Counted from the stretch's first letter, positions 2,508-42,474 are shown. The stretch is DNA of 64,000 nt from Blastocladiella emersonii ATCC 22665 (GCA_025594325.1 JANHCV010000012.1:248001-312000); one strand, 5' to 3'. Notes: a model not told the origin generated them from the sequence alone. Program-made: numbers and translations.

Positions 2508-5179
2508 GTGGTGCCCGGGAGGGATATATACATAGGATACATGCCACACGCGGAGTGAGACAGACAGTTGAGTTGTGACGTGCAGGCGGCGAGCGCGTCG
2601 TTCAGTCGCACCCGCTCTCACTCACCTCTAGCTCCCCAACCCAGCTAGACAGCACATGCATCGCCACTTGATGAAACTTGGAGAGCACCGAGCACTTAGT
2701 CCGTAGGCAAGGACCTCATCGAGCCGCTGAGCCGGTTCCTTCCCGCCGGCAGGCGCAGCAGCAGCGGTTGAAGGGTTGGTCGCCCTGTGCCAGCAGACCC
2801 ACCAGCCGCAGCACTCGCCGCGTCTTGTACAGTCCGTCGTGGCCACTCAATTTCGCTAAGCAGCTGAGCCCGCGCTCGTTGACGCAGTCACCGGCGGCGT
2901 GTGCTGAATCCACGCCGCGACGAACTCGCAGTGTGGGCAATGCTAAAAGGTCAAGCGCATGACGGCGAGATTCGTCCAGCTGGCGGCATGCAACTTTACG
3001 CGTGGCATGTGCGCAACTATTGTCGTTTGCAGCCAAAATGCAACTGGCTTGCTCCCGTGGCTGATACCCGGGTGCTATCCCGGCCTGATAATTGTGTGGC
3101 GCCAGTGTGGCGCCACACGTCGCGGTGACCGCTTTCGCGCTCGCTCGGCCCCTCGCGATCTTCCAGTTGCTCAATAAAATCGCATGAACTTCATGCAGCA
3201 CTTGCAGCAACGTCATTGCGTGCTCAGCGGCCAAGCACTGCGCAGGATCCCACGCCGCGTCGCTGGAGCTGGCCGAGCGGCCGGAGCTCGCGAGCGCGCC
3301 GCCCACGCCAACGACCACGATCTCGGGCGCAGAAGCATGATCGGCGAAGAACTGGATGCTTGAGCTCGTGACGCTGCTGTCGGTGAGGTCAAACTTGCGA
3401 GCCTCAGTGAGCATCGCGGCGGGGTTGCCCGCGCGCAAGTCCTGGATCGCGTTCGATCCGTCGCCGGATACGTTCGGCAGCACGAGCGCCGCGCAACCTT
3501 TGGACACGCCCGCTCGTGCGTTGCGCAGCACGCGGTCGATGCCACGTTCGACTCGCGAACCATGCGCATCGGCTAGTTCAGAGTCCGCGGCCGCGCGAGT
3601 GCGAGTTTCGCAGCACGAGCAAGATCTTGAGTGTCACCGCTTGCGGCGGGACGAACCGGCGCGTCGCCTACAGTACGCGTGCGTGTCCTGCAGGTTCGCA
3701 ACGTACAAGAGCGAGTAGTAGTTCTCGGGCATGGTGGCGCCGAACACAACGTTGCTTCTAGCACATCTTGAACGCTGAGAGGGCAGGCTAGGGGTTGAGC
3801 CCGGTCCGCGTTCGTCACGGCGTCCTGCACGCGGAGCACCTCGCCAAACACCATCAAGTCGGTTGAGAAACGAGTCAGTGGTCGACGCGCCGTTTACTCG
3901 CGATCCACACGAGCAACCCGATGAACAAACCAGCCGCGAGCATGGCGCTGATACTGAGAACAAAGTCACGCCGCAGACCAACGGCGGCCAAGAGCGCGAC
4001 CGCCGCTGAGCGACGTGGGGCCCGCTCACCTCACTCATTGAGAACCTCGCGCGCCGCGACAGGATCGAGCGCGGCGAGCACATTGGCGGTGCCTTACTGC
4101 TCGAGTTGCGCCACGTACCGCAGGTGCGCACCCCCGCGGGAAGGCAGGACGTAGCGATGCCGTCGGGCAATGTATCCGTGATTATGAGGTACGCCTCGAT
4201 AGCGCGCGGCGCGCCGAGCTGCGTCGCACGCGCTCGGCCTGTCGGGAGCCCGAGGCGACGGGCAGCGGAGCTGTCACGCAGCGACGAGTTCCGCTTGGTG
4301 GCGATCACGGCCGCCTTCACATGGCGTCCGAAAACCGCGGCGCGCCAACTCACTCGCCCGCGGGCCGCTCAAACAGCCGTCCAGGCAGCCGCATCAATGA
4401 GTGCCGCACTACTATCGATCGTCACGCTCACGCGACGATGCGTGGCCTCGGCCGGCTGCGGGTCGCGCGAGCAAGACGTGGCCCGCGACGAGTCGCAGCA
4501 TTTACGCGAGGTTTGAGCGTCCGTGGCCGCTCCGGCGCACTGCCAACGCCGCAAACGTTGCAGACTCTCGTCGGCCCGACAGAGTGTCGCTGAGCGGCTC
4601 ACGGCCGAGTCGCAGAAGGCCGACAAGGGTCCCTCGAGCGCGACGCGTCGCGCGAATCCGCTCACAGCGATCGTCAGTGACGCGAGGAGCAAGTTGCATG
4701 CAGAGAATTATTAAGCTATTGCTTCATGGCAAGGGGAGGGAGCGATGGAGGCAGCGAGCGCTCGACACGGCCGCCGCGGCGCTCGCCAGTGATAATTCGT
4801 GGCACGTGACCGCGGAGTATCAGCCCGCCAGCAGCGGCGAAACTCATTTTGGCTGCAAACGACAATGCACCGATCTGTCGGAAGCCACGCTCTCCCGATT
4901 GGCGCAAATGAGCGGACGTGTGCTTCTTGCCCACTTCCACATCAACTTTCGTGGCTCACCTTTCTTACCGAACTCGCTCAACTTGCGGCACCCTTTTCCT
5001 CACTCCCAGAGTCTACTCGCAATGAGCTGTGCAGCTCACTTCTCGGCCAGTTCAAACACGACCGCGGTATCGACCTAACCGCGTTCGAGCTCAACATGCA
5101 GATCTGCGTGAACACAGCGCGCTGTAATCACGGTGTGGCGCTTCCTGACCAGCGACTCTGGGGTATTCTCATTCATACC

Positions 5180-5205
5180 TGCCGTATCCCTATAGGGATA
5201 CGGCA
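5180..5205. other. Perfect 26-bp palindrome at left terminus
   Basis: TGCCGTATCCCTATAGGGATACGGCA is its own reverse complement. Confidence 0.97.
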
Positions 5206-5419
5206 CGCGGCTGCCCTTAGGGACTTCGCCATCGAGTCGCGATTCACCCGGGGCTCCCAATTGAATTCCCGTTGCTTACCCCGAGTGACACGTCTCATTG
5301 CTTACCCCAAGTGAATGAATCCCCGTTGCTTACCCCAAGTGAATGCTATGAGTCATGCCGAAATCCTTAGGGATTTCGCCACCCGGACCGGAGGCCGAAG
5401 GCCGAAGCAGGTGGGCGGG
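5180..5419 (+). repeat. Left terminal inverted repeat
   Basis: 5180-5230 is the exact reverse complement of 18583-18633 (51 bp); 5363-5419 matches 18448-18504 (57 bp, 1 mismatch). The middle holds 3 copies of TTGCTTACCCC(A/G)AGTGA versus 1 on the right. Confidence 0.95.
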
Positions 5420-5639
5420 CGGGCGGCGGCGGGCGGGTCACGTGGATCACGTGCACATGAACGGCGCGGCGACGCGACCACGGAGTCACTCTACGACTTG
5501 GTCGGCGACTTGGTCGCGGCAATAGGCCCTTGAAGGCTCTCGGAATAATTCCACGAGAGGTCGGCGACTGGTCCAAGAACGCGAGCAGCGACCCAGGTCG
5601 GCGACCAGCCCCGGATGGCTCATCGTGGCCACCACCTTT

Positions 5640-5924
5640 GAACCGTTCGCCGTAAGCCATAGACGGGACTGGACGGGACTGTCCATTGAAAACTCGCTCG
5701 GGCTAAGCAGTGGACGTCAGGACGTCACTAAGGGGGTGTTTTGAAAAGTTAGCAGGGAAAGGGGGGGGAAGTGACCACTCGAGTGACAACTTCCCCCCCC
5801 CTTTCGAGTCTGGAGAGGTCAAAGACCCCCTTCAGTCCCGTCCAGTCCCGTCCATGGCTTACCCCGAGCGAGTTTCAATGGACAGTCCCGTCCAGTCCCG
5901 TCCATGGCTTACAGCAAACGGTTT
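5640..5924. repeat. Nested imperfect fold-back (~285 bp)
   Basis: Outer arms 5640-5708 / 5857-5924 (~70 bp inverted), middle AAGGGGGT/ACCCCCTT, inner hairpin 5758-5804 with central CACTCGAGTG; direct repeat CAGTCCCGTCCAGTCCCGTCCATGGCTTAC at 5833 and 5883. Confidence 0.85.
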
Positions 5925-5959
5925 GATGGAGCGGGCGGGGACGGCGGGTCCGTCCGTGG

Positions 5960-6090
5960 TTGGGGGTGCCAGGTCATGGAGGGTCAGGGCAGCCAGGTCA
6001 GGTGGGGGTCAGGCGGGGTCAGGTGACTGGGTCAGGTGACGGGGTCAGGCGGGGGTCAGATCAGGGGTCGGGTCGGGGGTGCCAGATCAG
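5960..6090 (+). repeat. G-rich GGTCAG(G) repeat block
   Basis: Many GGGGTCAGG / GGGGGTGCCAG units; inverse of the CCTGACCCC / CTGGCACCCCC block at 17398-17585. Confidence 0.8.
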
Positions 6091-6438
6091 GGCCCTGTGA
6101 GGGATTTTTCGCTAACCCTGGCCCTATAAGAACCCCCCGCTCCCCCCGCCCTGAGAACTGCTCTTTGCCACTCACTATGAAAGCCATGTCACAGATTCAC
6201 TGCCTCAAGCCCTGCTCCAAGTGTATAGGCCATCTTTGCAATGCGCCCAATGCTTGCAGTAGGCTTCTGGTATGGGTGCATGGCCAACATTGTGGGTGGC
6301 CACTTCCCTATTCCTTTGGCTTGAGTTTTACAGGGCTATCTGCTTGTGCACAGCAATAGACTTGGTTGACTCCTGTCTTGGTCTGGATCATGGATGCTGC
6401 TTGGATTAGCTACCCATGCAGTGCTCTTTGATCCATTC

Positions 6439-6462
6439 CTCTCTCTCTCTCTCTCTCTCTCT
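6439..6462 (+). repeat. (CT)n microsatellite
   Basis: Seen directly in the sequence. Confidence 0.9.
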
Positions 6463-6628
6463 TTTGGGTGTGTTGGCGCTGTGTGGTTCGATGAGTCTCT
6501 GTGGGATACCAACGGTCTTCCACAGTCTTTTGGGTGTGTTGGCGCTGTGTGGTTCGATGAGTCACTGTGGGATACCAACAGTATTCCACAGGCTTTTGGG
6601 TGTGTTGGCGCTGTGTGGTTCGATGAGT
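6461..6628 (+). repeat. 66-bp tandem repeat, ~2.5 copies
   Basis: CTTTTGGGTGTGTTGGCGCTGTGTGGTTCGATGAGT begins at 6461, 6527 and 6593; the intervening 30-mers are near-identical. Confidence 0.92.
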
Positions 6629-7404
6629 ATTAGCAATGATGCCTGCTCCGTGTTGGAACTCTGATTAGTGGCTGGCCACCATGAAAGGAGACCTCCAGCA
6701 TGGAGCAGTCTGGGAGGCGCTTGGCCAACGCTTCCTGGACAGGGCGGAGCACCCCTTATTTCTACTTTATGTCATTGCCGTAGTGTGTCCCGTTGCTACG
6801 TCATGCCAGGTGTGTTGAACGCGTTTGTTGAATTAAACTTTGTTGGACTACTGTAACCATGCGAGGCTGTATCAAAGAGATTGTTCCCCTGCCCAAGCCG
6901 CCGTGCGATCACTACGATGCTCCCAGCTGGGTCTACGACAATGAGCTGCTGTGGGCCCAAGTTGTGTACCCATGCTGCGGGCACAAGTACACATACCGGC
7001 GGGTAGTCTGAGAGCGACCAGTAAAGGCTTCAAGGTAGCTAACCAAGTTAACTTGAAGGATCTATTCAAAGCAGACAGTGTACACAACCTTGGCACCTGG
7101 CAGGGCCACGTCGCGGATGGCCGTGTAGTTGGCTGTTGACTGGGGGCCCAGACGGCCAGTCCAAGGGATGCTCGTGGAAGGTGCGCGGGGCGTTGATGCA
7201 GTAGAGCCAGTATTCATTGTCCTGTGTCTTACTATGCCTTTGCAGAAAGAATTTAAAGCACATGTTGTTGCTTACTCTACAACGCGGAATACTTTGCTTG
7301 TGTACCCGACAATGGCCAGGTTGGCTACGAGGATCAGGGCGTTGGTCGCAACAAGGAGCGTCTCGAGGATCATGTTTACAGTAAGACAACAATAAAAGTC
7401 AACG

Positions 7405-8148
7405 TCAGATGAACGCAAGCTCGACGTAGAAGGGTTGGCCGAGAAAGTCAACAGAGCGCAGGCTCTCGTCTACCACGTCAATGTCAATACAGTCAATCTG
7501 CTGGGCCTGTCCCTGCGCGTCAAAGCGAAAGTAGTCACCCATGTGTGGTCGATGCTCAAACCAGCTGCCAAAGGGTTGCGTGACATGGATGCTACAAAGT
7601 ACGCCGTTGTCTTGTGGGTAAGCGCTGTACATGTTGTCTGCGAGCCAGGTACCCAGGTTGCGCGAGTAGATGTGAAGCAGGTTGATGGGCGAGATGTTGA
7701 CCAGCGCCGACGCGTACTGGACCTTGCTGTAGCCATACGCTCCAACAAAGCCCATGTGGACGTTCAGCGACGCCGTCCCTGTTCCAATTGTAAAGTCGAC
7801 CGTGTCGTTGGCCAGGCGCATCTTCTGGGTAGTCGAGTCAACCTGGACGTCCCAGGTGCCCTGCCAGAGGTACGCCAAGGGCGCGTTGTTGAGCAGGCTC
7901 TTGAGCGTGGCTGTGAACGTATCGACTGTGTAGTTGCCGTCGGGGACTGTGATGGTGCCAGGGAACGTCAGCGCGCCTCGGCTCTGGGTCAGGTACACTT
8001 TGTTGGCCTTGGAGTTGACCGTGTGCCAGCTGTTGCAGAGGTACGCCGAGTTGACCTTGACGCCGCGCACGGACAGGGGTCGTGGCAGGTACAGGATGCC
8101 GTTCTTGAGGTCGCGGCTGCAGATGGTCAGCGTCTTGTACTCGGACAT
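7405..8148 (-). CDS. PLV minor capsid (penton, single jelly-roll) protein
   Basis: Motifs TLTICSRD, NSWHTVNSKAN, TITVPDGNYT, HMGF, NISPINLLHIYS, IDIDVVDESLRSVDFLGQPFYVELAF match the PLV/virophage mCP pattern as I recall it; located in the capsid cluster. Confidence 0.82.
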   Translation of the reverse strand: MSEYKTLTICSRDLKNGILYLPRPLSVRGVKVNSAYLCNSWHTVNSKANKVYLTQSRGALTFPGTITVPDGNYTVDTFTATLKSLLNNAPLAYLWQGTWDVQVDSTTQKMRLANDTVDFTIGTGTASLNVHMGFVGAYGYSKVQYASALVNISPINLLHIYSRNLGTWLADNMYSAYPQDNGVLCSIHVTQPFGSWFEHRPHMGDYFRFDAQGQAQQIDCIDIDVVDESLRSVDFLGQPFYVELAFI

Positions 8149-8166
8149 TTAAACAAAGACAACAAT

Positions 8167-8433
8167 TTATTGTACGGCCGTGCCTGTGTCGTCGGCGTCT
8201 GCTTCAAAAATCTCGCTCGTTGGTCGGTTGTACCAGGTGTGAATGTCTTGGGCGAGGTCGGCGCCCTTGGTCACCATCTGCGCAATGGAGCTCACGGCGG
8301 GGTTGTGCGACCGCTCAAAGAACTTGGACACGGTCTTGACGCCCTTGAGCACGGTTGGCATGTGTTTGTTGACAAAGGACCCGACTTGGCCAAGCACGTT
8401 GCTAAAGTTGGTCCATAGGTTGCAGAAGATCAT
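8167..8433 (-). CDS. Small viral protein with amphipathic helices (88 aa)
   Basis: Fills the gap between MCP and mCP; TAAACCCCGCCATG start context; N-terminus NLWTNFSNVLGQVGSFVNKHMPTVLKGVKTVSKFF is amphipathic. Confidence 0.65.
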   Translation of the reverse strand: MIFCNLWTNFSNVLGQVGSFVNKHMPTVLKGVKTVSKFFERSHNPAVSSIAQMVTKGADLAQDIHTWYNRPTSEIFEADADDTGTAVQ

Positions 8434-8475
8434 GGCGGGGTTTAACTCTACGCAAGAAAAAAAAGGACAGGGCCG

Positions 8476-9696
8476 TTACTTGTAGATGTTGATCTCGCCA
8501 GTCGGCAGGAACTCGTAGACCACGTCGATGCCAATGAAGGCGTCCACGCGCTGGTTTGGGGCCACGCTTGAAGTCAGGATCACCTGCATGTCCACGGCCC
8601 GCGACTTGCATGACTTGTCGCCACTCACCACGGTGCGACTCGACTCAAGGTCACGGCCAACAACAAAGGTACCCTCGGCCGGCGCGTTGAACTTGTCAAC
8701 TGTGAGGCCAGCGCCAATGACGTGGCCATGGAAGGCATTGGTCAGCTCAACAAACGCCTCAGACGCGTAGTCGTCGCAGCGGACAGGTTGCTGAGGGAAG
8801 AGTTGGCCGGCTACGCTGAACTGGTACGTGGTAATGGTCTTGGCGCGAAGGAACGAGTCCTTGGAGTTGTCATTGAGCACAGCATTGTCGCGGAACGACA
8901 GCAGGATGTCCTTTTGCGAGGCAGAGCGGTCCGAGACGTTGAGCGTTGAGTTGGGCACCGAGTAGTTCAGGAAGTGGTGGTTGTAGGTCGTACCAAAGAG
9001 CTTGAGCCCCTGCTTCTTGAAGGCCGCGTCCATGACCGCGATCTGCTGGTCGTTGAGCTTGATCAGGTCCGAGACAATGCAGACGTCCTTGACTGTGTAG
9101 CCCGGGATGGCATTGTTCTTGACCACTCAAGCGTCGCTGCCAGGCGCAAGGGTGAACTCGACGCGGATACCGCCTGTGTACTTCATGGGGAGGTGCTTCT
9201 GGTTTGCCAGCAGGGCCGACTTGATGGGCAGCATGTACCGGTGCAGCCCAGACAAGACAGCAAACTTGTCGGCGCCGGACGCAAAGTAGCCCTGTGCCAC
9301 GCCAAGACACGAGTCCTTGAGGTACTGGGGGACTGTCACGTCGGCCTCAATGCGCTGACGCAGGTTGTAGTACGGGAGCTCTTCGAGTAGGGCACCAGAC
9401 GCGCTGTAGATGCGGACGCAGTCAATGACGCTGAAGATACCATTGCAGAAGGCGACGTTGGCGTCCGTGGTCTTGGCTGAGAACTGCAGGAAAGTACAGT
9501 GCGTGTCCATCATGTCGTCGCGCGGCGGGAGCAGGACGCTGATGCTGTTGCCAGGAGCAAACTCGGGGCCGCCCTGAGCCGTGAACTGGACAGTCTGGCG
9601 CTCGGCATAGACAGACTCCTTGGGCAGGGTGAACGACATCTCGGGAGGGAGCGTCTTGGACAGGACCTGCGAGAACTGGGCGTTGGTACTGGACAT
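8476..9696 (-). pseudogene. PLV major capsid protein (double jelly-roll, ~406 codons) with one in-frame TGA at 9129-9127
   Basis: ORFs 9127..9696 and 8476..9126 are in frame and contiguous (...LAPGSDA*VVKNN...). Motifs FAPGNSISVLLP, SVIDCVRIYSASGALLEELPYYN, HLPMKYTGGIRVEFTL, YQFSVAGQLFPQQPV, FVVGRDLE, SG, DAFIGIDVVYEF...GEI are typical of PLV MCPs. Confidence 0.88.
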
Positions 9697-9736
9697 GGTT
9701 TGGTTTAGAACACTGCAACAAAAAAAAGTCGGCGGT

Positions 9737-10534
9737 CTATCCCTTCACGATCCACTCGCTGAAGCTGTCTACGAGCCGGTACTTGGGCGGGTTCTGGTTG
9801 TTGACGCCCAGGAAGCGTCGCTTTGTGTTGCCAGTACGCGTGTCAAAGAGCTGTTCGATGATGGCCTCAAACTCCTTGAGGTCGAACTGCGACCCAATCT
9901 CCTTGTGCAGCGTCTGGACCTCAGTCTTGTCGTAGATTGGGTAGACGACGCTGTACAAGCAGTTGATACGCAGAGTCTTGGGCAGGGCACACCACCGCTG
10001 GACGCCAATGATGCAGCTGATCTTTAAGTGCCGCGAGTTGCACAGAAAGTTGGTCAGCGTCTTGTGGCTCAGGAGCTTGAGCCCGAGCACGTTGTCGATG
10101 ATCAGCAGCTGGTCCTGGAGCGCCTTCTTGCCAGACTCTTCAAACGTCTTGGTCAGGTCTTGGCGCATCTTGAGCAGGGTTGGGATGAACTGCTCGGGGT
10201 CTGTGACAATGCAGCTTGGCTTGATCTTGAGCCGGTCCGGGTCGCGCTCCTGGGGGTCCAGCACGTTGCGCTCCTTCTTGGGCGGTCGCAGGATCGGTTG
10301 ACTGGCAATGTACTCGTACTTGTCGTTGGCGTGGAATGTTGGGTTGAACACCCAGATGTTGTCGAACTGGCCCTTGTAAAAGTGCGGGAAGCAGACCATG
10401 TTCGCGATCAGCGTTGACTTGCCCTGACCCTTGGCGCCAATGACGTTCATGGTAAATGGGTGCTTGGGGATTGGCAGCGGCTCGCCATCGTCGTTGCGTG
10501 TAAAGCCGTTGTCAATGGCAACAATGTCGTACAT
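9737..10534 (-). CDS. A32-like (FtsK/HerA) DNA packaging ATPase
   Basis: Walker A GAKGQGKS, Walker B LLIIDN, motif NSRHLKISCIIGVQRWCALPKTLRIN. Confidence 0.93.
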   Translation of the reverse strand: MYDIVAIDNGFTRNDDGEPLPIPKHPFTMNVIGAKGQGKSTLIANMVCFPHFYKGQFDNIWVFNPTFHANDKYEYIASQPILRPPKKERNVLDPQERDPDRLKIKPSCIVTDPEQFIPTLLKMRQDLTKTFEESGKKALQDQLLIIDNVLGLKLLSHKTLTNFLCNSRHLKISCIIGVQRWCALPKTLRINCLYSVVYPIYDKTEVQTLHKEIGSQFDLKEFEAIIEQLFDTRTGNTKRRFLGVNNQNPPKYRLVDSFSEWIVKG

Positions 10535-10560
10535 TTAAAGACTGCAAACAAAAAAGGGCG

Positions 10561-12276
10561 TCAGTCCCAGCCAAGGTCAAAGACAATGCCGCTGCGCTTT
10601 GGGGTCTCGCGGACCTGCTTGACGGGCCGCTCAGGGATCTTCTGGTGACGCTGGATCTTGGGCGCCGTCAGCCCGCTACCCGCTGCCCGCTTGTCCGTGA
10701 ACAGCTTCGCGTCGGTCGGCTTCTTGTAGCCCAGTTGCTTGAGGATCTGTTCGAGGAGCATGTCGGTCTTCTTAGAAGTACCACCGGAATTGTTTTGCGC
10801 GGCGAGCTCCCTGATCATGGCCTCGAGGCTGCTCGTGTCAGCAGGCTGGACAACGACTTGGGGTGCAGGAATAGTGTCCAGCTTGGACCCAAGGTCTTGG
10901 AGCGTCTTGGTCATGGCCTCGTTGCTCTGGGTCTGCCCTTGGATCGCGCCCTGGACGCCGCTTGCGAGCTGGTTCATGAGCACCTGCTGGTTGCTGAGCG
11001 CCGAGGACATGCCCGTGGCAATCTCGGACACAATCGCGCGGTTGCCAGCGTCGATCTGGCGGACAAAGTCGTTGCGTTCGGCTCAGAGCGTGTCCACGAT
11101 CCTGGACGCGAGGTTGGCAAACGAGTCCATGGCCAGTCCCTGAGCGGCCGCCGTCTGATCAATGAGCGCCTGGTACGCCTGGTACTGCATGACCTGGGAC
11201 CCAGCAAACTGCGAGGCAATGAGCTCAAGCGCGGCCATGACGTTTGGGTCATTGTTGTACTGGACCAGGATCTGCTGCCGCATGTCCACGTTCTGCTCGT
11301 AGTAGTTGTTCTCATACTGGGTGATGAACTGCCGCATGTCAATGTTCTGGGTGTCCTGCTGCGTGTAGCTGTTGTAGACGAACTGGTTGAACTGTTGAAA
11401 GTTCTGGACGACGTCGACTTCCATGTCGTCCGTGGTCATCAGCGCCCGCTCGGGGTTGTAGACCTGCAAGTCCTTGGAGCCCTCAATCATGCGTGCCTCG
11501 TCCATGGCCGGGTGGACGTGACCCTCGTTGTACACGCTTGGTCGCTGTGCCACGTCAGGGGCATAGCTTGGTGGCATGACCACAATGTCGCGTGTGCCGT
11601 CATCAAGTCGTGGTGGGAGGTCGTTGCCGCCGTCATTGTCGTTCTGGATCAGTTACCAGCCAGGGATCATGGCGCCGTACTCGTCAATGTCTTGGCCAAC
11701 GTAGTCGCCAGCCTCAACTGGGTACTGCTCGGGCATGACTGGCCGGACAGGCACGGGGAGCAAGTGGTCTGGTACAGCGTCCTCGTCAATGACGTCCAGG
11801 GCTCGCGAGATCTCTTCTGCCAGCTCGTCGCGTTCCTCTTCGCTGCTACCCCTGTCGCTGTCCGTGGCTGACTCGGGGGGCTCTGGTCCAGGACTTGCCG
11901 CTGGTGGAGCGACTGGGACTCGAGTAACCTTGCCCGTTGCCTGGTGCTCTTCCCACGCTTTAAGCGTATCTCGGACGTGCTCCTGGAGGTCCTTGACCTC
12001 GTACCCAGTGACGCTGTCCTGGTGCTTGAGGTAGAACAGCGAGTCGCCTCTTTTGCGGTCAAAGTCGTTGGCATAGCTCTCGGGCGTCACCTTGTAGTCA
12101 AAGGCAAGGATGTAAGGCACCCAGACGTCGAGGAGCTCTTTGGCATTGGGGAACGTGTACTCGCGGCCGTCAATGGTCGCCTTGATCTTCTGCCCTACAA
12201 GGCGCTCTGCCGTGATGCGCCCACCAGTTGCCTTGGTCACTCTTGCAAGTAGATCTGGTACTGTTCTTCGGCCCAT
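10561..12276 (-). pseudogene. Long viral ORF (~571 codons, Q/N-rich helical) interrupted by TAA (11655-11653) and TGA (11085-11083)
   Basis: ORFs 11653..12276, 11083..11583 and 10561..11031 share one frame. The linkers read open: PGW*LIQNDNDGGNDLPPRLDDGTRDIV and VDTL*AERNDFVRQIDAGNRAIV. Confidence 0.7.
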
Positions 12277-12353
12277 GATAGTTACTGTATGGACCGAAAA
12301 TAAAACGTCCCCCTGTTGGTACCTTTTTCCCCGTGGCAGGTGCCTTTTGTCCC

Positions 12354-12605
12354 TCAGACGGTGCTATTTGCCCCCTGGTCCCGGCGCTTGGCGTTGAGTG
12401 CCTTGTAGATCCGGATCTTGACCCGTTCGGCCCGCGCTGCCTCGTCGTTGACGTGTGTGTACCGGTTGGCCTTGCGGTCGCGCTTCCGTAGCCACTTGGC
12501 CTTGTCCTCGTCGCTCTTGCTGTACCAGCTGCTTGGCACAGGCATGGTCCCGGCGAGGTGCTCCTGCCACTTGTCCAGGCTCAGGTCATGGTCGCTGGAA
12601 ATCAT
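12354..12605 (-). CDS. Small basic hypothetical viral protein (83 aa)
   Basis: Fills the gap between neighbouring viral genes; K/R-rich helical C-terminus. Confidence 0.5.
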   Translation of the reverse strand: MISSDHDLSLDKWQEHLAGTMPVPSSWYSKSDEDKAKWLRKRDRKANRYTHVNDEAARAERVKIRIYKALNAKRRDQGANSTV

Positions 12606-12625
12606 TCTGTTTGCTTAAGTTAAAC

Positions 12626-14569
12626 ATGGTCAAGAATATCTTTAACGTCTCAAGTACTGCGTCTCTGACCGTGTCTGCCACTGGGGTCTCTGACGTGTCC
12701 AAGGCATACGTCGACGCGGCCATCAGTACCGTGTATGCCACAGTCGGTGCACCTGTTGCTGGCCCTGGCGTGGCAGTCTCAGGGACCACTGTCTCGGCCA
12801 AGGTCGACGACCAGACCCTTGGCGTGGGCGCAGCAGGGCTCTTTGTCAAGTCGGTCGGCACGGCACAGCTGCTCCCGGCCAGCGTCACGGCCGACAAGGT
12901 CGCGACCATTACAGCAGGGCAGGTCACAGGCAAGCTCGTTGATGCTCAGCTGGATACTGTGTCTGCGTCCAAGGTCGTGGGCGTGCTCAGTGCGTCCAAC
13001 CTCCCAGCCGTTGGGACCTTGGTCCTGGCAGACGGCTCAGTGACTGATGCCAAGGTCGCGTCCGTGTCTGGGTCCAAGCTTGTGGCAGGCACAGTCGGGA
13101 CCTCGGTCCTGGCAGACGGCGCAGTGACTGATGCCAAGGTCGCGTCCGTGTCCGGGTCCAAGCTCGTGGCAGGCACAGTCGGCACGGCAGCTCTCATTGA
13201 CCTGGCAGTCACGGATGCCAAGGTCGCGTCCGTGTCTGGGTCCAAACTCGTTGCAGGGACTATTGGGACGGGAGCCCTGGCAGACGCAGCCGTATCCAAC
13301 GCCAAACTGGCAACTGGCATTGATGGGTCCAAGCTGGCAGCCGGCACAGTCGGCACCTCGGTCCTGGCAGACGCGGCTGTGACCAACGCCAAGCTGGCAA
13401 CTGGCATTGACGGGGCCAAGCTCAACGTCGGGTCCATTGGAACGGTCCAGCTGGCAGCAGGCGCAGTCACAGACGCCAAGGTCACGGACGTGTCGGCGGT
13501 CAAGCTCACTGGGACCCTCGACCCTGCCCGCATCGCCAACGGGACCCTGACCAACGCCAAGCTGGCATCTGGCATTGACTCGGCCAAGCTTGCAGGGACC
13601 ATTGACCTGGCACGACTCCCCGACGTCTCGGCCAAGGTCACAGCCGTGAGCGCGGCCTCGGTCACTGGCACGCTCCCCCAGTCCACCCTTGGGCTCGGCG
13701 CTGACTTTGCCTTTGCGAATACGACGGACAGCTCGACGTCAAGCACTGGAGCAGTCACCATTGCTGGTGGTCTTGGAGTCAGCAAGCAACTGACTGTGCC
13801 CAACGTCCTGGTCCAAAATGCCACGAGCGCAAACCTTGTCTTTGACTCAGCTGCCAATACATTGACGTACGTCGACTTTAAGCAGGCAGGCGTCCTCAAG
13901 AGCAACCTGGCATGCACGGCGGCGGGTAACATTGAGATTGCGTCCGCGACCACGGGCGGGGTCTCCCTTGTGGCAGGTGGCGGCAACGTGGTCGTGGGCT
14001 CGGCGACGCTTGGCACAGAAAAGCTCCGCGTCAATGGCACTGGTCGGTTTACAGGGCAGCTCACCCTTGACCTCGCTCCCGTGGCAGGCACTGACGCGGC
14101 AAACAAGGCGTACGTCGACTCGCGGTCCAGCCTGACCCGGTACGTTGCTCAGGCCGAGCACCGCTCCACAAACGGAGTGACCACGGGCGGCAAGATCATT
14201 GGCGGCACAGCGTCGACAGGTCCGGCCACCTTTGCGTTCCAGTCCACGGCGGGCGCGTTCACGTCCGTGATCAATGGATGCGTCAAACCCCCTGTCAGTG
14301 GCTACTACCTTGTCCATGCAAAGGGCTACTACGCAAACGGCACGCTCCCTGGATCCCACACTGTGAACTTTGCGCTGTACAACATGACGGACATGATTGC
14401 AGTGTCGCTTGTCACCGGGTGCCGCGCTGAAGGCAACGTCCAGTTCCTTCAGTTCTTGAGCATCGAGTACCTTGACGCGGCCAAGAGCTACTCTTTCATC
14501 TGGATCCCGTTGGTGGCAGTTGCCAACGACTGCCAGGTCATCATTCAAAGCCATTGGGCCATGCTCTAA
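12626..14569 (+). CDS. Fibre/spike-like protein (647 aa) with 28-29 aa repeats and putative C1q/TNF-like head
   Basis: ATG in TAAACATG context; repeats (T)xxLADxAVTDAKVASVSGSKLVAGTVG (84-bp DNA period at 13042/13126/13210); KAYVD motifs; TTDSSTSSTGAVTIAGGLGV motif; C-terminal VKPPVSGYYLVHA. Confidence 0.78.
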   Translation: MVKNIFNVSSTASLTVSATGVSDVSKAYVDAAISTVYATVGAPVAGPGVAVSGTTVSAKVDDQTLGVGAAGLFVKSVGTAQLLPASVTADKVATITAGQVTGKLVDAQLDTVSASKVVGVLSASNLPAVGTLVLADGSVTDAKVASVSGSKLVAGTVGTSVLADGAVTDAKVASVSGSKLVAGTVGTAALIDLAVTDAKVASVSGSKLVAGTIGTGALADAAVSNAKLATGIDGSKLAAGTVGTSVLADAAVTNAKLATGIDGAKLNVGSIGTVQLAAGAVTDAKVTDVSAVKLTGTLDPARIANGTLTNAKLASGIDSAKLAGTIDLARLPDVSAKVTAVSAASVTGTLPQSTLGLGADFAFANTTDSSTSSTGAVTIAGGLGVSKQLTVPNVLVQNATSANLVFDSAANTLTYVDFKQAGVLKSNLACTAAGNIEIASATTGGVSLVAGGGNVVVGSATLGTEKLRVNGTGRFTGQLTLDLAPVAGTDAANKAYVDSRSSLTRYVAQAEHRSTNGVTTGGKIIGGTASTGPATFAFQSTAGAFTSVINGCVKPPVSGYYLVHAKGYYANGTLPGSHTVNFALYNMTDMIAVSLVTGCRAEGNVQFLQFLSIEYLDAAKSYSFIWIPLVAVANDCQVIIQSHWAML

Positions 14570-15678
14570 AGCCCGCGGTCCCACTTTTCTTGGACTCGGA
14601 CTGGGACGCGCCTGACCCGGGTCGAGGGCTCCCTTGGTGTGACCGGGGTGCGCGCAACAGGGGGCCTTGGAAGACTTGGGGCCATGCGTGGCCTGGTCGG
14701 CGGGTCCTGGGTTGCTGTGACTGGCTGGACGTCGCTTCGAGGGTAGAAGCCCTTGAGACCTTGGACCTTGTAGCTTGGATTGCTCATGCCTGACCCCTTG
14801 CGCACAACCTGGACCTGGCTCACAGTTGGCGACCAGACCGGCTTCCCCTTGGCCTCCATGGCAGTCTTGTACGGCTCGCGGACTCGGACCTGGGCCCCTA
14901 CCTTCAGCAACGCGCTCAGAGGGTCGCCTTCTGGCTTGCCCTTGGCAGCTCGGATCGCCTTGAGTGTGTCCTTGGCCATTTCGCGGGGCATGTCATGGAA
15001 CTCGTTGGGCGCCCTGCCCGTGGCCCTTGACTTGCTGCTGTTGATCACAGATTCAATGGTCTCGAGGTGCTTGGGCCAGTCGTTGTTGCCTGGGATGGAC
15101 AGCCACGGCGTCAGCATCCGGCGGATGGTCCCATTCATACGCTCAACAACACCTTGACCGTATGGCACGCCTGCCTTGCCCTTGATGTGCTTGACGTCGG
15201 TCCCGGCCTCAATGCCAAAGAACTCGGTGCCATTGTCCGTCTGGATTGTGGCAGGTACAAGGCTGTGCTTGGCGACCACGCCAGACCATGCTTCCCGCGT
15301 CTTGTCCTTGGTCTTGACTGGGCGTAGGTAGACGCGCCGACTCGCGAGGTCGACACACGTAAGAATGTAATGGAAGCCTTTGTACGTACCGTTTTTGCCC
15401 ATGTCAATGAGGTCAAGCTGGAAGTTGCGTCCCGGACTGGTTGAGCTGATGCTTCGAATGTCTTGCCGCTTCTGTGGTGCGCGCTTGTACTGCTGCCACA
15501 CGGACTGGTCGTTGAGCCACCGCTCGAGCTGGGCGCGGTAGATGTGCTTCCCTGTATGCTCGCGGTCAACAATGTCAAAGAGCCGGTGGATCCCAACCCC
15601 GACGTGGCCGCGTTTGTAGTACAAGTCTGTCAGGTACTCGGTCTGTTCAGCAGTCAAAGGTTCTTTGTGTGGGTACAT
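14566..15678 (-). CDS. Polinton-type rve (DDE) integrase with C-terminal SH3-like domain
   Basis: FQLDLIDM (D), YILTCVDLASR, IQTDNGTEF (D), QGVVERMNGTIRR (E), DWPKHL, LKVGAQVRV. Stop overlaps the fibre stop by 4 bp. Confidence 0.95.
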   Translation of the reverse strand: MYPHKEPLTAEQTEYLTDLYYKRGHVGVGIHRLFDIVDREHTGKHIYRAQLERWLNDQSVWQQYKRAPQKRQDIRSISSTSPGRNFQLDLIDMGKNGTYKGFHYILTCVDLASRRVYLRPVKTKDKTREAWSGVVAKHSLVPATIQTDNGTEFFGIEAGTDVKHIKGKAGVPYGQGVVERMNGTIRRMLTPWLSIPGNNDWPKHLETIESVINSSKSRATGRAPNEFHDMPREMAKDTLKAIRAAKGKPEGDPLSALLKVGAQVRVREPYKTAMEAKGKPVWSPTVSQVQVVRKGSGMSNPSYKVQGLKGFYPRSDVQPVTATQDPPTRPRMAPSLPRPPVARTPVTPREPSTRVRRVPVRVQEKWDRGL

Positions 15679-15698
15679 TACAATACAACAGACAAAAG

Positions 15699-16841
15699 TT
15701 ACACCATGTAGTGGGCGACGGCGACAGGCACGCTGTGACCCATCTCATTGGCGCGCTGGGCAATGGCCGCGTAAGCCCCGGCGTTCTCGCTCGCGGCAAT
15801 CCAACGGATCTGCTGCACGCCGCACCCGTCAAACTTGAGCTTCTTGGTAGCAAGGCCAATCGTCTTGGACCAGTCCTTGCAAATGGCCGTGTTCACCTTG
15901 GCGTTGTCAAGGTCCTTGATCGTGTAGTCAAAGAACAGCAGCTCGTAGCCGTCTTCCTTGCGCTTGGCCATGACCCGCTCCAGGGCGTCTGCCACGTTGG
16001 GGTTGGCAATGACGTGCGAGAACTCATAGCCACGACCCTCGGTCTTGACACAGATTGGGCCAGCCAGCGTCTTGGTCTTGGGGTTGTAGGATGGGTACTT
16101 GTCGCTTGGGGCTGTGGTCAGGAACGCGAGGTCGCTGCGGGTCGCGCACACAACTTGGAGGTACAGGCGGAGGTAGCGCATGGTGCCCGTGCACTCGAGC
16201 TTGTCCCATTTCTCAGCAGCAACCGCGGCGGCCAGCAGAACGGCACGGCTTGGAAGGGCGCCCGACTTGAGCTCCTTGCGCACGTCCACGCTGGCGTCGG
16301 CGTCCCGCTTCTTGGCCTCCGTGTACTTGGCCCCAAGCTCAGTCCACCCGTTCCACGTACAGTACTTGGCCAAGGCCTTGAGCGTCTCGACCTGCAGGCC
16401 CTGGACGTTCTTGGACCCCTTGGTCGCGCGGTACGTGGCCACGGCCTTGGACACGGCCTCGACGTCCTGGATGTCCATGCCTGACTTGGCAAATGCAAGG
16501 AGCACGCGAGTCGTCTTCGCCTTGTCCATGTCGCTCAGCGTAGCCTGCTCCCCGTTCTTGTTCACCACGGGCGCGTTGACACATGCCTCAATGGCCTCCT
16601 CGGTCAGCTCGGCGAACTTGACCTCGGGTGCATCGACTTCCACGGGAGTGACTTGCTGATCAGCGCCGTGATCTGGGTCGTGTGACTCGATGGCCTTGAG
16701 TCGCGCGTCAAAGTCCATGAAGCGCTTGTCAATAGACCCAAATACGGGCTGGAGCTTGTCCATGACTTGCTGCACCACGTCTGCGGCAACATGCTGAGCA
16801 AGGGCAACGGCGACCTGGGAGACAAGAGACTTGAGCGACAT
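15699..16841 (-). CDS. Tyrosine recombinase (PLV/virophage type)
   Basis: Catalytic residues in the expected order: ATRSD (R), VKT (K), QQIRWIAAS (R; the HxxR His is Gln), EMGHS (H), AHY (Y) at the C-terminus. Confidence 0.82.
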   Translation of the reverse strand: MSLKSLVSQVAVALAQHVAADVVQQVMDKLQPVFGSIDKRFMDFDARLKAIESHDPDHGADQQVTPVEVDAPEVKFAELTEEAIEACVNAPVVNKNGEQATLSDMDKAKTTRVLLAFAKSGMDIQDVEAVSKAVATYRATKGSKNVQGLQVETLKALAKYCTWNGWTELGAKYTEAKKRDADASVDVRKELKSGALPSRAVLLAAAVAAEKWDKLECTGTMRYLRLYLQVVCATRSDLAFLTTAPSDKYPSYNPKTKTLAGPICVKTEGRGYEFSHVIANPNVADALERVMAKRKEDGYELLFFDYTIKDLDNAKVNTAICKDWSKTIGLATKKLKFDGCGVQQIRWIAASENAGAYAAIAQRANEMGHSVPVAVAHYMV

Positions 16842-16966
16842 GGTTTACTGACTGTCAACAAAAAGGCTCCATGGGCTCAAGTGCGTTTGAACGCAACGTT
16901 CTTTTTTCTGGGTAGCTGGGCCTGGGTCAGGGTCAGGGTGGTGGCAAGTCATGGACCGTGGGAGGG

Positions 16967-17400
16967 CCCAGGTCACGGTTTGAGCGGATTGTGACCTCGG
17001 CCTCTGCTGGCGCCCAAGTCGGGGTCATGGGGGGGGTGGAGGTCAGGTTCTTTGCCCTCAGTCGTGTCCCAGGTCACGGTTTGAGCGGATTGTGACCTTG
17101 GCCTCAACTGGCTCCCAAGTTGAGCTCATGGGGGGTTCGTGACCTCGGCCTCTGCTGGCGCCCAAGTTGGGGTCATGGGGGGGGTGGAGGTCCGGTTCTT
17201 TGCCCTCAGTCGCGTCCCAGGTCACGGTTTGAGCGGATCGTGACCTCGGCCTCAACTGGCTCCCAAGTTGAGCTCATGGGGGGTTTGTGACCTCGGCCTC
17301 TGCTGGCGCCCAAGTCGGGGTCATGGGGGGGGGGGGGGGGGGTGGAGGTCCGGTTCTTCGCCCTCAGTTGCATCCCAGGTCACGGTTTGAGCGGATCGCC
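16967..17400 (+). repeat. Modular tandem repeat, 4 copies (101/148/158-bp spacing)
   Basis: CCCAGGTCACGGTTTGAGCGGAT at 16967, 17068, 17216 and 17374; optional ~47-bp module in copies 2-3; G18 run at 17325-17342. Confidence 0.92.
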
Positions 17401-17585
17401 TGACCCCCCAACCTGACCCCCTGACCTGGCACCCCCGACCCTCCTTGACCCGGCACCCCCAACCTGGCACCCCTGACCTGGCACCCCCGACCCTCCTTGA
17501 CCCGGCACCCCCAACCTGGCACCCCCGACCCTCCTTGACCCGGCACCCCCGACCCTCCTTGACCCAGCACCCCCGACCTGGCACG
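17398..17585 (+). repeat. C-rich CCTGACCCC/CTGGCACCCCCGACCCTCCTTGACC repeats
   Basis: Seen directly; inverse of the left block at 5960-6090. Confidence 0.85.
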
Positions 17586-17606
17586 TCCCTTCCTGCTAAG
17601 ACGCTG

Positions 17607-18183
17607 CCTGCTAAGACGCTCCCCTGCCCTGACCCCGTACCCTGACCCTCTGTCTTTGATTAATACATTGATTAATACATTGATTAATACATTGATGCTG
17701 CTAAGACGCTCCCCTGCCTTGACCCCCGTACCCCAACCTCTTGTCTTTGAAAGTCCCGTTTTTTACTACAGAAACCGTGGTTTGTATAGTACTCTGACTG
17801 TTTCATAGCAAAAAACGGGACTTTTACGGTGATAGCTTCATAGCAGTTGCTTGCGGCAGGTGGTCAGGGACAGGATCGGGGACGGGATCGGAGACTTGAT
17901 CATGGGTTGGCTCATGGATCAGCTCGGGGTCCCTGCTAAGACGCTCCCTCGCCGACCCCCCGTACCCTGACCCTTGTCTTTGATTAATACATTGATTAAT
18001 ACATTGATGCTGCTAAGACGCTCCCCTGCCTTGACCCCCGTACCCCGACCTCTTGTCTTTGAAAGTCCCGTTTTTTACTACAGAAACCGTGGTCTGTATA
18101 GTACTCTGACTGTTTCATAGCAAAAAACGGGACTTTTACGGTGATAGCTTCATAGCAGCCGCTTGCGGCAGGTGGTCAGGGAC
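17607..18183 (+). repeat. ~260-bp direct repeat x2 (17607-17871, 17932-18183), each with a GATTAATACATT array and a 15-bp-stem hairpin
   Basis: Near-identical copies; arms AAAGTCCCGTTTTTT / AAAAAACGGGACTTT at 17750-17764/17810-17824 and 18062-18076/18122-18136; 12-bp unit x3 versus x2. Confidence 0.92.
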
Positions 18184-18410
18184 GGGCTCGGGGGTCAGGT
18201 CAGGGACGGGCTCGGGGGTCAGGTCAGGGACAGGCTCGGGGGTCAGGTCAGGGACCAGACCAGGGAACTCTGTCAGTGGGTAGCCGCAGCTGCGCTGCTC
18301 TTCGTCTCGCTGCGCTCGCCGGCCGCCGCCGACCGCTCAGGGTAAGCAATGGTCAGGGACCAGCTCGGGGGTCAGGTCAGGGACGGGCTCGGGGGTCAGG
18401 TCAGGGACTC
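18170..18410 (+). repeat. GGTCAGGGACGGGCTCGGGGGTCA repeats
   Basis: Several ~28-bp copies seen directly. Confidence 0.85.
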
Positions 18411-18447
18411 ACTCCTCGACCACTCGCCCCTCCCTTCCGCCCACCCT

Positions 18448-18633
18448 CCCGCCCACCTGCTTCGGCCTTCGGCCTCCGATCCGGGTGGCGAAATCCCTAA
18501 GGATATCGCTATATTCATTATGAGTCACTTGGGGTAAGCAATGAGATATCACGTGGGTTAGCCCGGGTGGATAGAGTCCAGAGGCGAAGTCCCTAAGGGC
18601 AGCCGCGTGCCGTATCCCTATAGGGATACGGCA
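18448..18633 (-). repeat. Right terminal inverted repeat ending in the same 26-bp palindrome (18608-18633)
   Basis: Reverse complement of the left TIR blocks. Confidence 0.95.
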
Positions 18634-18732
18634 TGAAGAATGAGATGAGGGTTGTGTTCGCTGCGGATCATGTTCACTGGTCTTGCGGGCGGGTAGAAAC
18701 AATGACATTTATTTATGCTCGACGCACGTGCA

Positions 18733-19557: not shown

Positions 19558-20731
19558 TCACACGTCGTCCTCTAACTTGGCGCGCATCGCAAGCAGCCTG
19601 GCGAGGCGCTCCTCAGAGATGGCGTCCTGGCCGGGCTTGAGCACCTGGATCGACTCGCCGTCCACCTCCTGCAGCAGCTGTTCGAGGATCGCGTTGAACT
19701 CGGCCGCCTGCTCCTTGCCGTCGCCGTCCTCCTCGGTGTCAGCGACCGCTGCGGCCGTCGTGGGCGCGCTGCTGCTGCTGGCCGCGGCGGCATCTGGCTC
19801 CGAGCTCGACCCAAGCCCCGTCTTGTCGTTGAGCTTGCCCTGGCCAATGACCATCTTCTCGAGCTGGCGCTTGGACTGGGCGCGCTCGTAGACCATCTGC
19901 TCAAACTCGGAGATGAACCGGAACACTGTCACTGGGCGATCCTGTCCCATGCGGTGGGCGCGATCCATGGCCTGGAGGTCGACGGCGGGGTTGTCGGACG
20001 AGTCGAGGAGGACCACCGTGTCGGCGGCGACCAGGTTGAGCCCGAGCCCACCGGCCTTGGTGCTGAGCAGGAACAGCTTGCACTCGGGGTCGTTGTGGAA
20101 CTTGGCAATCGCCGCCTTGCGCTCCTCGTGGCCGACAGACCCGTCGAGCCGCGCGTGGCCCCACCCCTTGGACTCGAGGTAGTACTGGACAATGGTCAGG
20201 AACGTCGTGTACTGCGAGAACAGGAGCACCTTGTGCTTCTGGTCGGCCTCGTCGACGAGCAGCGCGCGCAGGATCTGGTCCAGCAGCATCATCTTGCCCG
20301 ACCGCGCCACGAGCGAGGCCTCGGGCTCGTAGTCAATTGGGTACTCGGGGTGCGGGAACAGGAACGGGTGGCACGACAGACGCCGCACCGCCATGTACTT
20401 GTGGCGCAGCCCGACGCTCAGCTCGCGCGTCCGCGGCACGCGCACGTCGAGCGCCTCGAACTTGGCCGTCAGGTACTCGACCAGCGTGTTCTCGCGCACC
20501 GCCGTGAACAGGTCGCGCTGCTCGCGCGTCAGCGGCGCCGTCACCACCAGCTCCTTTTTCGGCGGGAGGTTCAGGTTCACGTCCGCCTTGACGCGGCGAA
20601 GCATGAAGGGGCCCAGGATCTGGTGCATCTTGGTCACAAGCTGATTCGTCAGCTGCAGGTTCAGGATCTTGTCGCGGTTCAGCTTGGTGCCCTCAAGCTC
20701 GAAATCGAACCACCCAAGGAACGAGTCTACA
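19558..20731 (-). pseudogene. 5'-truncated HELLS/DDM1-like helicase (C-terminal half only)
   Basis: SVDSFLGWFDF...KMHQILGPFMLRRVKADVNLNLPPKKE, SGKMMLLD, KVLLFSQ, RLDGS, FLLSTKAGGLGLNLVAADTVV, DLQAMDRAHRMGQ, KRQLEKMVIGQGK. Preceded by an acceptor CAG; no ATPase N-lobe exons before the next gene at 20888. Confidence 0.82.
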
Positions 20732-26130: not shown

Positions 26131-26730
26131 GGTGGGGAGAGCTGGAGCGGGCACAGAAGCGACGGCGGCGGCGGCGTGCGAGGAGCGGCGGTACGCGGCG
26201 AGGAGCGGGTTCGCGGTGTCGTCAGTGACGGGAACGGGCGCGCGGACGACGCAGGCGTGGAGCAGGTGCGGGCCCCACGGATCCTCCTCGTGCGCGGCGG
26301 CAGACTGTGTTGGCGGGTAGTTCATCGCGGAGAGGTCCGTGCGAGAGAGACGAAGCGAGGACCGCCGCCGGACGACTTGGAGGCCCGCTCGCAGAGATCC
26401 GCGGGCCCGGCTCGGTCGCGCAAAAGGTTACATGAGACGCACGGGTGTTGTGGTATGACGACAGGAAGGGGAGAGGGGAGGGCCGGCGGGTGGGCCGCGC
26501 TTCCTGATAGCAGCGAGGAGCGGCGGAAGATTCCGGGCTGAGGGGGAGTGGCTGATGCATGGATGAAACGCGCGACCCGACTTCCGCCGCGGGCTGACAC
26601 GCGTCACCTGACGTGCGGTTTCGGCGGGATCCGACTCACTGCGCCGCGACGCGTCGCTCACTTCGTCCCTGAATCGCTCCCCGAAACCCCACGATTCCAT
26701 GAAGCAACTGCATGCAACACGCCCATCACC

Positions 26731-36658: not shown

Positions 36659-37109
36659 TGTATGACCTTTCTGCTCGCGTTTGCGAGACTCGCGTGAAGT
36701 TGCGGCGGTTCGAACGATGCTCGATATCACGCCCTCTCTATCAGTTGTGACTTCCGCTCCCGCTCGAAGTTGCTCTGTCGTTCCGGATTCAATAAATTAG
36801 TATCCCTGAAAGAACCAATAATTTGGCTGGTGGCCGCGGGGTTTGCGAGTACTCACCAGCTCAACTCGCATCTGTCGTGAGCTCCGGAACCGTAGGAATG
36901 CCAGTTATCCCGAGCAATTATAAGACACAAAGAGTTTTGCAGCATGCACATCGCCACTCTCTTGCGCACGGGGACCAAACAGGGTGTGAGACGTCTCGAT
37001 ATCATGGGATAACACGTGGCGCCGTAAACGCCACATTGCGACCGTCGGCTCCCTTTTCTCGCACGACCCAACTCTCAAGCTCCCCAGAGACCCGACAACT
37101 CCCAAAGCA

Positions 37110-39394: not shown

Positions 39395-39869
39395 TGGCCC
39401 ATGCCGGTCCCTTTCATTTCACGACACGTTTGTTACTCTGCAGCACGCGACATGTCGTAGCTTCATTCTTTGCCTTGGTGCACGCAGGATCAATAAATAC
39501 GCACGTTTTTATCTCTCGAGCCGGTTGAGCCCGTGGAACCTCGATTCTGCGAGAGTCTGGCTAGCGGTTAAATATTGAATTCGTGAAGCGTGAGGTCCAA
39601 CGAGCCGCCCCACGCGCGAGCGGCCGATCTTGTCACGTCGCGTTCAGCGGTTGACTCGGACTATTTAGAAATCAGATTTTTTCCAGCTTGCACGTCGCTG
39701 CTTGCTTGCGCACTAGGACCCAGCAGGGTGTGAGACGCGTCGATCAATCGTGTGACTGCACGTGCTCCTGTCCACGAAGTGTGAACGCCACCTTGCGAGC
39801 GCCGAACTCGCCTCGCTCGCCGGACGCTAACTCTCCGCCCCTGGCGAACCCCACAAACCTTGCGCGACG

Positions 39870-42225: not shown

Positions 42226-42474
42226 TCGCTACCCCCGTTCGCTGTAATATTTCTTTTGCAGCGCACAAGTCGCTGGAGCTTCATTTTCTTTGCCTTTTCC
42301 AGTATCGATAAATACGCGTTTGTACTTTCCTTTTGATCGAACTCATGGAAGTTCCTTGCGAGGTTGGCATGCAGTGACTGAGGTAGGCTTCAGCTCGCTT
42401 TTTGATATGCAACCGCGAGCGCGGTCAATCTCCTTGCGCTCGCTACCCTCTAAAATCCGCTCAACTCGTTGCAC

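Follow-up and report, generated by a model that had tools for sequence, protein, structure and literature searches.

A degenerate copy of an endogenous polinton-like virus family in the fungus Blastocladiella emersonii that has probably lost its replication gene

A stretch of 64,000 nucleotides from the assembly of Blastocladiella emersonii ATCC 22665 (GCA_025594325.1, JANHCV010000012.1:248001-312000), referred to below as the window, contains an endogenous polinton-like virus (PLV) bounded by terminal inverted repeats (TIRs) at window positions 5180-18633 (13,454 bp). An initial annotation of this DNA described the element as a capsid-encoding virus with two recombinases and no replication module, and suggested that elements of this type replicate by means of the host machinery or a helper virus. 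Comparison with ten sister loci taken from the same assembly (L001-L009 and L014), out of ~30 copies estimated to be present in the genome, leads to a different view. The window copy is very probably a degenerate, non-autonomous member of a multi-copy B. emersonii PLV family that has lost its replication gene, and not the representative of a lineage able to do without a replication module. The key observation is that a large replication gene lies between the tyrosine-recombinase (YR)-like gene and the TIR at 10/10 sister loci. The suggestion that the element type relies on the host or on a helper for its replication was thus not borne out.

The sister cores are colinear with the window between 6.6 and 17 kb, with 78-94% nucleotide identity over ~10 kb at all ten loci. 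Two unrelated types of replication gene were found in them. In four of the sisters (L001, L002 and L004, 780 aa; L005, 813 aa and 54% identical) the product is an SF3 D5/P4-type primase-helicase with a C-terminal D5/P4-type SF3 helicase domain. This protein matched Pfam DUF5906 (1.8e-17 to 2.2e-20), PHROG DNA primase (4e-26 to 6e-29), the PDB primase 6k9e (6e-13) and the P4 primase family TIGR01613, and tblastn with it returned 229 phage records, most of those listed being annotated as primase. NCBI annotation leaves the SF3 gene uncalled at all four loci. The other six sisters (L003, L006-L009 and L014) encode a UL9/CyRepA1-like helicase protein of ~940-1071 aa, with matches to Herpes_ori_bp (5e-10) and to the plasmid replication family CyRepA1 (1e-13 to 1e-14); a tblastn search of plasmids with this second protein found nothing. 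Because the N-terminal halves of both replication proteins gave no Pfam match at E=10 and no PDB match, the label "primase" depends on what the C-terminal part matches, a domain of D5/P4 type. Alignment A2 contains an invariant D-x-D, which hints at an AEP primase but no more than that.

The corresponding interval of the window copy is a slot without a replication gene:

16966-18241, no strand: empty replication-gene slot, ~1.3 kb of tandem repeats

Its repeats are 148-nt units (16966-17400), 14+24-nt units (17400-17600) and two 312-nt units (17668-18241). No ORF of the window element matched a polymerase, primase or helicase in Pfam, and tblastn with four sister replication proteins detected no remnant of them in the window. 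These profile scans and tblastn searches agree with the earlier report that no protein-primed PolB (pPolB), primase, SF1/SF3 helicase or adenovirus-like protease is recognizable here. The space available was underestimated in that report, which counted ~1.2 kb at 6180-7400 as the only uncommitted sequence and left out the repeats of the slot. The borders of the missing segment can be read by comparison with L006. Window positions 16966-17387 match L006 9656-9216 and positions 17575-18409 match L006 6027-5450; these two blocks are the two ends of the gene-bearing segment of L006, and the ~3.2-kb segment between them is absent from the window. The presence of a replication gene in the slot of all ten sisters marks the window copy as a probable deletion derivative. 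The initial annotation had anticipated that sisters might carry a polymerase or helicase, which they do, but it looked for the gene between the left TIR and the minor capsid protein gene; it lies instead between the YR-like gene and the right TIR. The spacing within this part of the element varies in one further respect: at L007 the replication gene and the YR-like gene are separated by ~3.4 kb (6549-10001), far more than in the other copies, and the extra length may come from an insertion nested in the spacer or from the expansion of a repeat array.

The other features of the window element are as follows:

5180-5426, no strand: left terminal inverted repeat; starts with TG, and its tip (5180-5230) is perfectly matched at the right end
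5427-6100, no strand: left subterminal repeat region, with internal inverted repeats at 5628-5936
7066-7392, minus strand: conserved 108-codon ORF with no function assigned, open in the window
7405-8148, minus strand: candidate penton (minor capsid protein, mCP), by position; 247 aa, intact
8167-8433, minus strand: conserved 88-aa ORF between MCP and mCP, conserved in all copies
8476-9696, minus strand: major capsid protein (MCP) gene, predicted double jelly roll; one in-frame stop
9737-10534, minus strand: A32/FtsK-HerA-type genome packaging ATPase; 265 aa, intact; Pfam Pox_A32 2.9e-11, above the cut-off
10561-12276, minus strand: conserved 571-codon gene (ORF571) with no function assigned; two in-frame stops, no frameshift
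12626-14569, plus strand: fibre protein; 647 aa from the ATG, intact; ORF open from 12455
14566-15678, minus strand: rve/DDE integrase; 370 aa, intact, unfused to reverse transcriptase
15699-16841, minus strand: YR-like ORF, by motif spacing; 380 aa, intact
18441-18633, no strand: right terminal inverted repeat; ends with CA, tip (18583-18633) perfect

Several signs of decay accompany the loss of the replication gene. The window copy has three in-frame stops, one in the MCP gene and two in ORF571, and no frameshift. The MCP ORF (406 aa) is intact in 9/9 sisters tested, and ORF571 is unbroken in the nine tested except L003, where it has one stop and lies in two frames. The copy is also mosaic in structure. 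L005 is the closest match to its core and right TIR, its left subterminal region corresponds to the L001/L004 type, and the repeats that follow the YR-like gene correspond to the L006/L014 type. No target-site duplication (TSD) was found at its ends, either at 5180/18633 (ATACC vs TGAAG) or at 5167/18645. At L005, the only sister with both ends readable, the sequence GAAAT flanks the element on both sides as a 5-bp TSD. Short TSDs and TG...CA tips are established features of integration by rve enzymes, and the combination of the two in this family fits integration by its rve protein. We infer that recombination between two resident copies could lie behind the mosaic structure, the missing TSD and perhaps the deletion together.

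These observations can be combined into a working model. A full-length member of the family would be ~15.3 kb long, with TIRs that have TG...CA tips and a 5-bp TSD; the full-length sister L005 measures 15,334 bp. Its gene set would comprise a double jelly-roll (DJR) MCP, the penton candidate, the A32-type ATPase, the fibre, the conserved ORFs of 571, 108 and 88 codons, the rve integrase, the YR-like protein and one replication protein. Judging from the TSD and the termini, the rve integrase would insert the linear genome, while the helicase-type protein, whether SF3 D5/P4-like or UL9/CyRepA1-like, would presumably start replication and recruit host polymerases. In the window copy, the repeat blocks on either side of the slot would have recombined, or the DNA between them been deleted, with loss of the ~3-kb replication gene. 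Because the replication gene is gone, the copy is mosaic, a TSD is missing and two virion genes contain three stops, it would now be a non-autonomous relic in decay that is replicated as a passive part of the chromosome.

Some points weigh against this interpretation. The sisters inspected are ten of ~30 copies, and a replication-less sub-lineage that has multiplied is conceivable. That the gene was lost here rather than gained elsewhere is an argument from parsimony, made because two gene types share the slot in all other copies and the flanking repeats are conserved. The window copy has kept its rve integrase, YR-like ORF, ATPase, mCP, fibre and 51-nt TIR tips intact, and the decay would therefore have to be recent and partial. 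Lastly, stops in multi-copy endogenous viral elements (EVEs) can be artefacts of assembly or polishing (Bellas et al. 2023, PMC10120064).

The intact parts of the window copy would also suit a non-autonomous yet competent passenger, on which the proteins of intact sisters act in the manner known from non-autonomous DNA transposons. Its TIR tips are perfect over 51 nt, the rve, ATPase, mCP, fibre and YR-like ORFs are unbroken, and many sisters with apparently intact genes reside in the same genome. We nevertheless consider it unlikely: with no TSD, the ends of the window copy do not look like a clean integration product, the replication gene is present in 10/10 sampled sisters with no sign of the deleted form multiplying, and the replication origin may have gone with the deleted segment. 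A little less likely again is an assembly artefact, in which the missing gene, the mosaic and the stops arose when near-identical copies and tandem repeats were collapsed or wrongly joined in assembly or polishing. The published assembly has high contiguity, its contigs reaching megabase size; unique host sequence lies on both flanks within the window; and the breaks consist of three in-frame stops with no frameshift. The missing TSD and the mosaic of L005, L006/L014 and L001/L004 types would agree with such an artefact, as would the false stops of which Bellas et al. (2023, PMC10120064) warn, but recombination between copies in one genome would produce a mosaic just as readily.

The reading of the initial annotation, a capsid-encoding PLV that is without a replication module by design and depends on the host machinery or a helper virus, appears highly improbable. 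In favor of it, the window copy shows no detectable replicase, and many protist EVEs have no detectable polymerase (Bellas et al., PMC10120064). Against this stand the helicase-type gene in a fixed slot of all ten sisters, which are 78-94% identical in nucleotide sequence, the repeat blocks that still flank the slot in the window, and the decay visible elsewhere in the copy with its three stops. Under the interpretation that we favor, loss of the replication gene from a degenerate family member, the surprising idea of a capsid-encoding element without any replication gene is explained by the decay of a single copy.

The limits of the element were set from its termini. Its two TIR tips (5180-5230 and 18583-18633) are 100% complementary over 51 nt, and the similarity continues beyond them in gapped form to ~5426 and ~18441 (101 nt at 85%). 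A perfect inverted match of 51 nt at a distance of 13.4 kb cannot be due to chance. The TG...CA tip is common to every copy aligned, window and sisters alike, and the ends were for this reason placed at 5180 and 18633. The 13.5-kb TIR-bounded element reported earlier is therefore retained as to its TIRs, while its ends at 5167 and 18645, which took in a weak 8-nt flank match, were corrected. This inverted match (TCTCATTC / GAATGAGA, at 5167-5179 / 18634-18645) lies 4-5 nt beyond the TIR tips; it lengthens the apparent repeat in the window copy only and is not a TSD. The GC content of the element is 58.9%, compared with 63-65% in its flanks. A 38-nt repeat motif of the left subterminal region (5958-6092) is found again in inverted orientation at 17397-17578. 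Rfam and tRNA scans of the window gave no matches.

The capsid module supports assignment of the family to the PLVs. The MCP of a sister copy, P0021, is intact and 94% identical to the window MCP, and 352 relatives of it were found in a library of 1.84 billion proteins. Its AlphaFold2 (AF2) model, built from an alignment of 64 sequences, has a pLDDT of 91.4. Foldseek searches with this model matched PBCV-1 Vp54 (2e-17) and Sputnik (8e-12), as well as the MCPs of an iridovirus, faustovirus and many nucleocytoplasmic large DNA viruses (NCLDVs), and a search of BFVD returned NCLDV and virophage MCPs down to 2.8e-22. By way of this sister model, the product of the window MCP gene is predicted to be a double jelly roll. 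The MCP named in the initial annotation was thereby confirmed; the in-frame stop in its gene had been overlooked. MCP relatives outside B. emersonii are distant, the best being 39% identical. The A32 ATPase was correctly recognized from the start, as seen from the Pox_A32 match listed above. The penton candidate gave no family match in Pfam or PHROGs. It adjoins the MCP gene, and a 33%-identical homologue occupies the same position in the metagenome contig Ga0115924_1392317 (L010, described below), which makes it a candidate penton by position and homology. The 88-aa ORF beside it is fused to the mCP by NCBI gene models through an intron. We treat it as a separate gene because a 132-aa homologue is found at the equivalent place in L010. 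The 108-codon ORF is open in 9/9 sister loci tested, with 91-100% identity in seven and about 40% in two. ORF571 had no family match, and what had been described as three small ORFs proved to be pieces of this one 571-aa gene with two interruptions.

The fibre protein contains 84-nt (28-aa) tandem repeats and matched Pfam Phage_Tail_Tip (4.8e-08), PHROG tail fibres and, by tblastn, cyanophage tail fibres (4e-13), in keeping with its earlier designation. The neighboring rve ORF matched the IS481 (7.7e-19) and IS30 (1.7e-06) transposases of NCBIfam, PHROG transposases, and ~80 PDB chains of retroviral integrase cores, the best at 4.6e-04. Its match to Pfam rve (2.2e-06) scored 28.3 bits, under the 32.6-bit cut-off, and a tblastn search of plasmids with it found nothing. 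Together these matches make a solid prediction that ORF 14566-15678 carries an RNase H-fold DDE catalytic core. Since the ORF is also unbroken, the intact rve integrase of the initial annotation stands.

The second of the two recombinases reported there is less secure. The 380-aa ORF is intact as described, but its identity as a tyrosine recombinase found no confirmation in a library match or a usable model. Its homologues, at 55-90% amino acid identity, are confined to B. emersonii. No match was obtained in Pfam up to E=10 with 11 family members, nor in PHROGs, NCBIfam, the PDB (sequence and profile search) or by tblastn against phages. Because the AF2 model reached a pLDDT of only 43 from an alignment of eight sequences, a Foldseek search with it was uninformative: all hits had E>1, with Cre recombinase appearing three times without significance. 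The case for a recombinase comes from alignment A4, which contains in order an R-S-D-L-x-F-L motif, a V-K-T-E-G hairpin, I-R-R/W and a C-terminal G-H-S-x6-Y, the last three conserved to at least 90%. Residues K266, R346, H369 and Y378 are at least 90% conserved, and R235, in the R-S-D-L-x-F-L context, is kept in all covering copies except L003. The spacings R346-H369 and H369-Y378 are 23 and 9, which we take to be those of XerD. From the spacing of these motifs, the ORF seems somewhat more likely than not to encode a tyrosine recombinase.

Two side observations concern the same gene. It is more divergent between copies (55-90% amino acid identity) than the MCP, ATPase and mCP genes (84-100%), and it groups by the type of replication gene: SF3 type B is accompanied by an L005-like form and the second type by an L006-like one. 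The YR-like gene and the replication gene may be exchanged together as one module. A stand-alone rve gene adjoins the YR-like gene in every copy. Among 8,300 PLVs and virophages, rve and YREC have been found together only through nested retrotransposons (PMC12220804), and if the YR-like ORF were a true recombinase, its constant pairing with rve would be an architecture unseen among 8,300 PLVs.

Homologues of the ATPase at 88-98% identity are annotated solely in B. emersonii ATCC 22665 (GCA_025594325.1). They identify the host, and so uphold the earlier view of an endogenous polinton-like virus in an apparently fungal genome. In this fungus 18 different ATPase proteins, under 19 accessions, are encoded on many contigs, and ~38 MCP sequences of the family were found. 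The supplement of a 2025-26 preprint surveying eukaryotic assemblies lists GCA_025594325.1 with 30 viral regions, 1.27% of 32.65 Mb, a figure that fits ~30 elements of 14-15 kb. The family is thus a multi-copy endogenous PLV in a fungus, with ~30 copies, and represents a known kind of element in an unusual host. These elements are not discussed in the B. emersonii genome paper or in the main text of the survey preprint, and the paper on Mycodnaviridae, giant viruses that persist in zoosporic fungi, mentions neither Blastocladiella nor PLV elements. When IMG/VR and JGI metagenomes were scanned for patterns derived from MCP alignments, no free-living relatives came up.

We know of no isolated double-stranded DNA virus of this class from fungi. 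As a tentative proposal, the copies would form an undescribed fungal PLV lineage, ~30 strong, in which every member combines a stand-alone rve integrase with a highly divergent tyrosine recombinase and two non-homologous helicase-type replication genes alternate in one slot; its members could be virophage-like partners of giant viruses (Mycodnaviridae). Intact family members are available for descriptive study of the capsid, integration and replication modules.

The family shares most of its properties with the PLVs described among protist EVEs (PMC10120064, PMC12220804). These are 14-40 kb long, have TIRs of a few hundred bp and a 5-6-bp TSD where an rve integrase is present, encode a DJR MCP, a penton (a candidate by position in the present family), an A32-type ATPase and phage-like fibres, and occur in many copies per genome, some of them degraded. 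Of the terminal features, TIRs and rve are present in the window, whereas the 5-bp TSD is seen in L005 and not at the window copy. Primase/helicase fusions (AEP-S3H, Prim-S2H) in place of pPolB, and modular turnover of replication genes, have already been described in PLVs (PMC12220804). The B. emersonii family likewise has a replication protein of its own, of S3H or S2H type, in 10/10 sisters, while the window copy is without one. With two unrelated replication genes in one slot among copies that are 78-94% identical, the family illustrates, on a small scale and in nature, how modules are exchanged within the polinton-like supergroup. The family differs from the PLVs described in that its host is a fungus (Blastocladiomycota), a group left out of the protist survey of Bellas et al. 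(PMC10120064), and in that every copy has a stand-alone rve gene beside a YR-like ORF.

Polintons/Mavericks (Orthopolintovirales) also have TIRs, an rve integrase, a DJR MCP, a penton (again a candidate here) and an A32-like ATPase. The B. emersonii family is unlike them in its helicase-based replication and in its TSD, which is 5 bp in the one readable copy. Neither the ORFs of the window element nor the sister slot genes of the ten copies matched protein-primed PolB. No adenain-like protease (Peptidase_C5-type) was matched in the ORFs scanned with Pfam, although a remote homologue inside ORF571 is still possible. The window copy itself resembles the non-autonomous or deleted forms to which autonomous DNA transposons and endogenous viruses give rise, since it keeps the termini and part of the genes and has lost an essential function that its sisters have. 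It departs from them in having no TSD, in being the sole copy of eleven with the deleted architecture, and in giving no evidence of having been copied.

Among the closest relatives found outside B. emersonii is L010 (JGI 3300009351), an 8-kb environmental contig. It has, in synteny with the window, a large ORF, an A32 ATPase, an MCP (36% identity), an ORF88-like gene and an mCP (33%), with a fragment of an rve integrase at the contig end. It differs by an HNH/AP2 endonuclease gene between the ATPase and the MCP.

Some features of the host sequence elsewhere in the window deserve mention. An SNF2-family helicase (19558-20637; Helicase_C 1.8e-23, SNF2-rel_dom), whose ORF ends ~0.9 kb from the right TIR, and a DEAD_2 (XPD/Rad3-type) helicase (26712-27773) are host genes outside the element. 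At 34357-42732 the host DNA is arranged in tandem, in three to four units that repeat every ~2.75 kb and are 60-85% identical; each contains long ORFs of 317-480 aa with no Pfam match. At 53954-60470, two sets of host genes for LRR_6 leucine-rich-repeat proteins are duplicated in tandem, one with a period of ~1.3 kb and the other with a period of ~1.87 kb.

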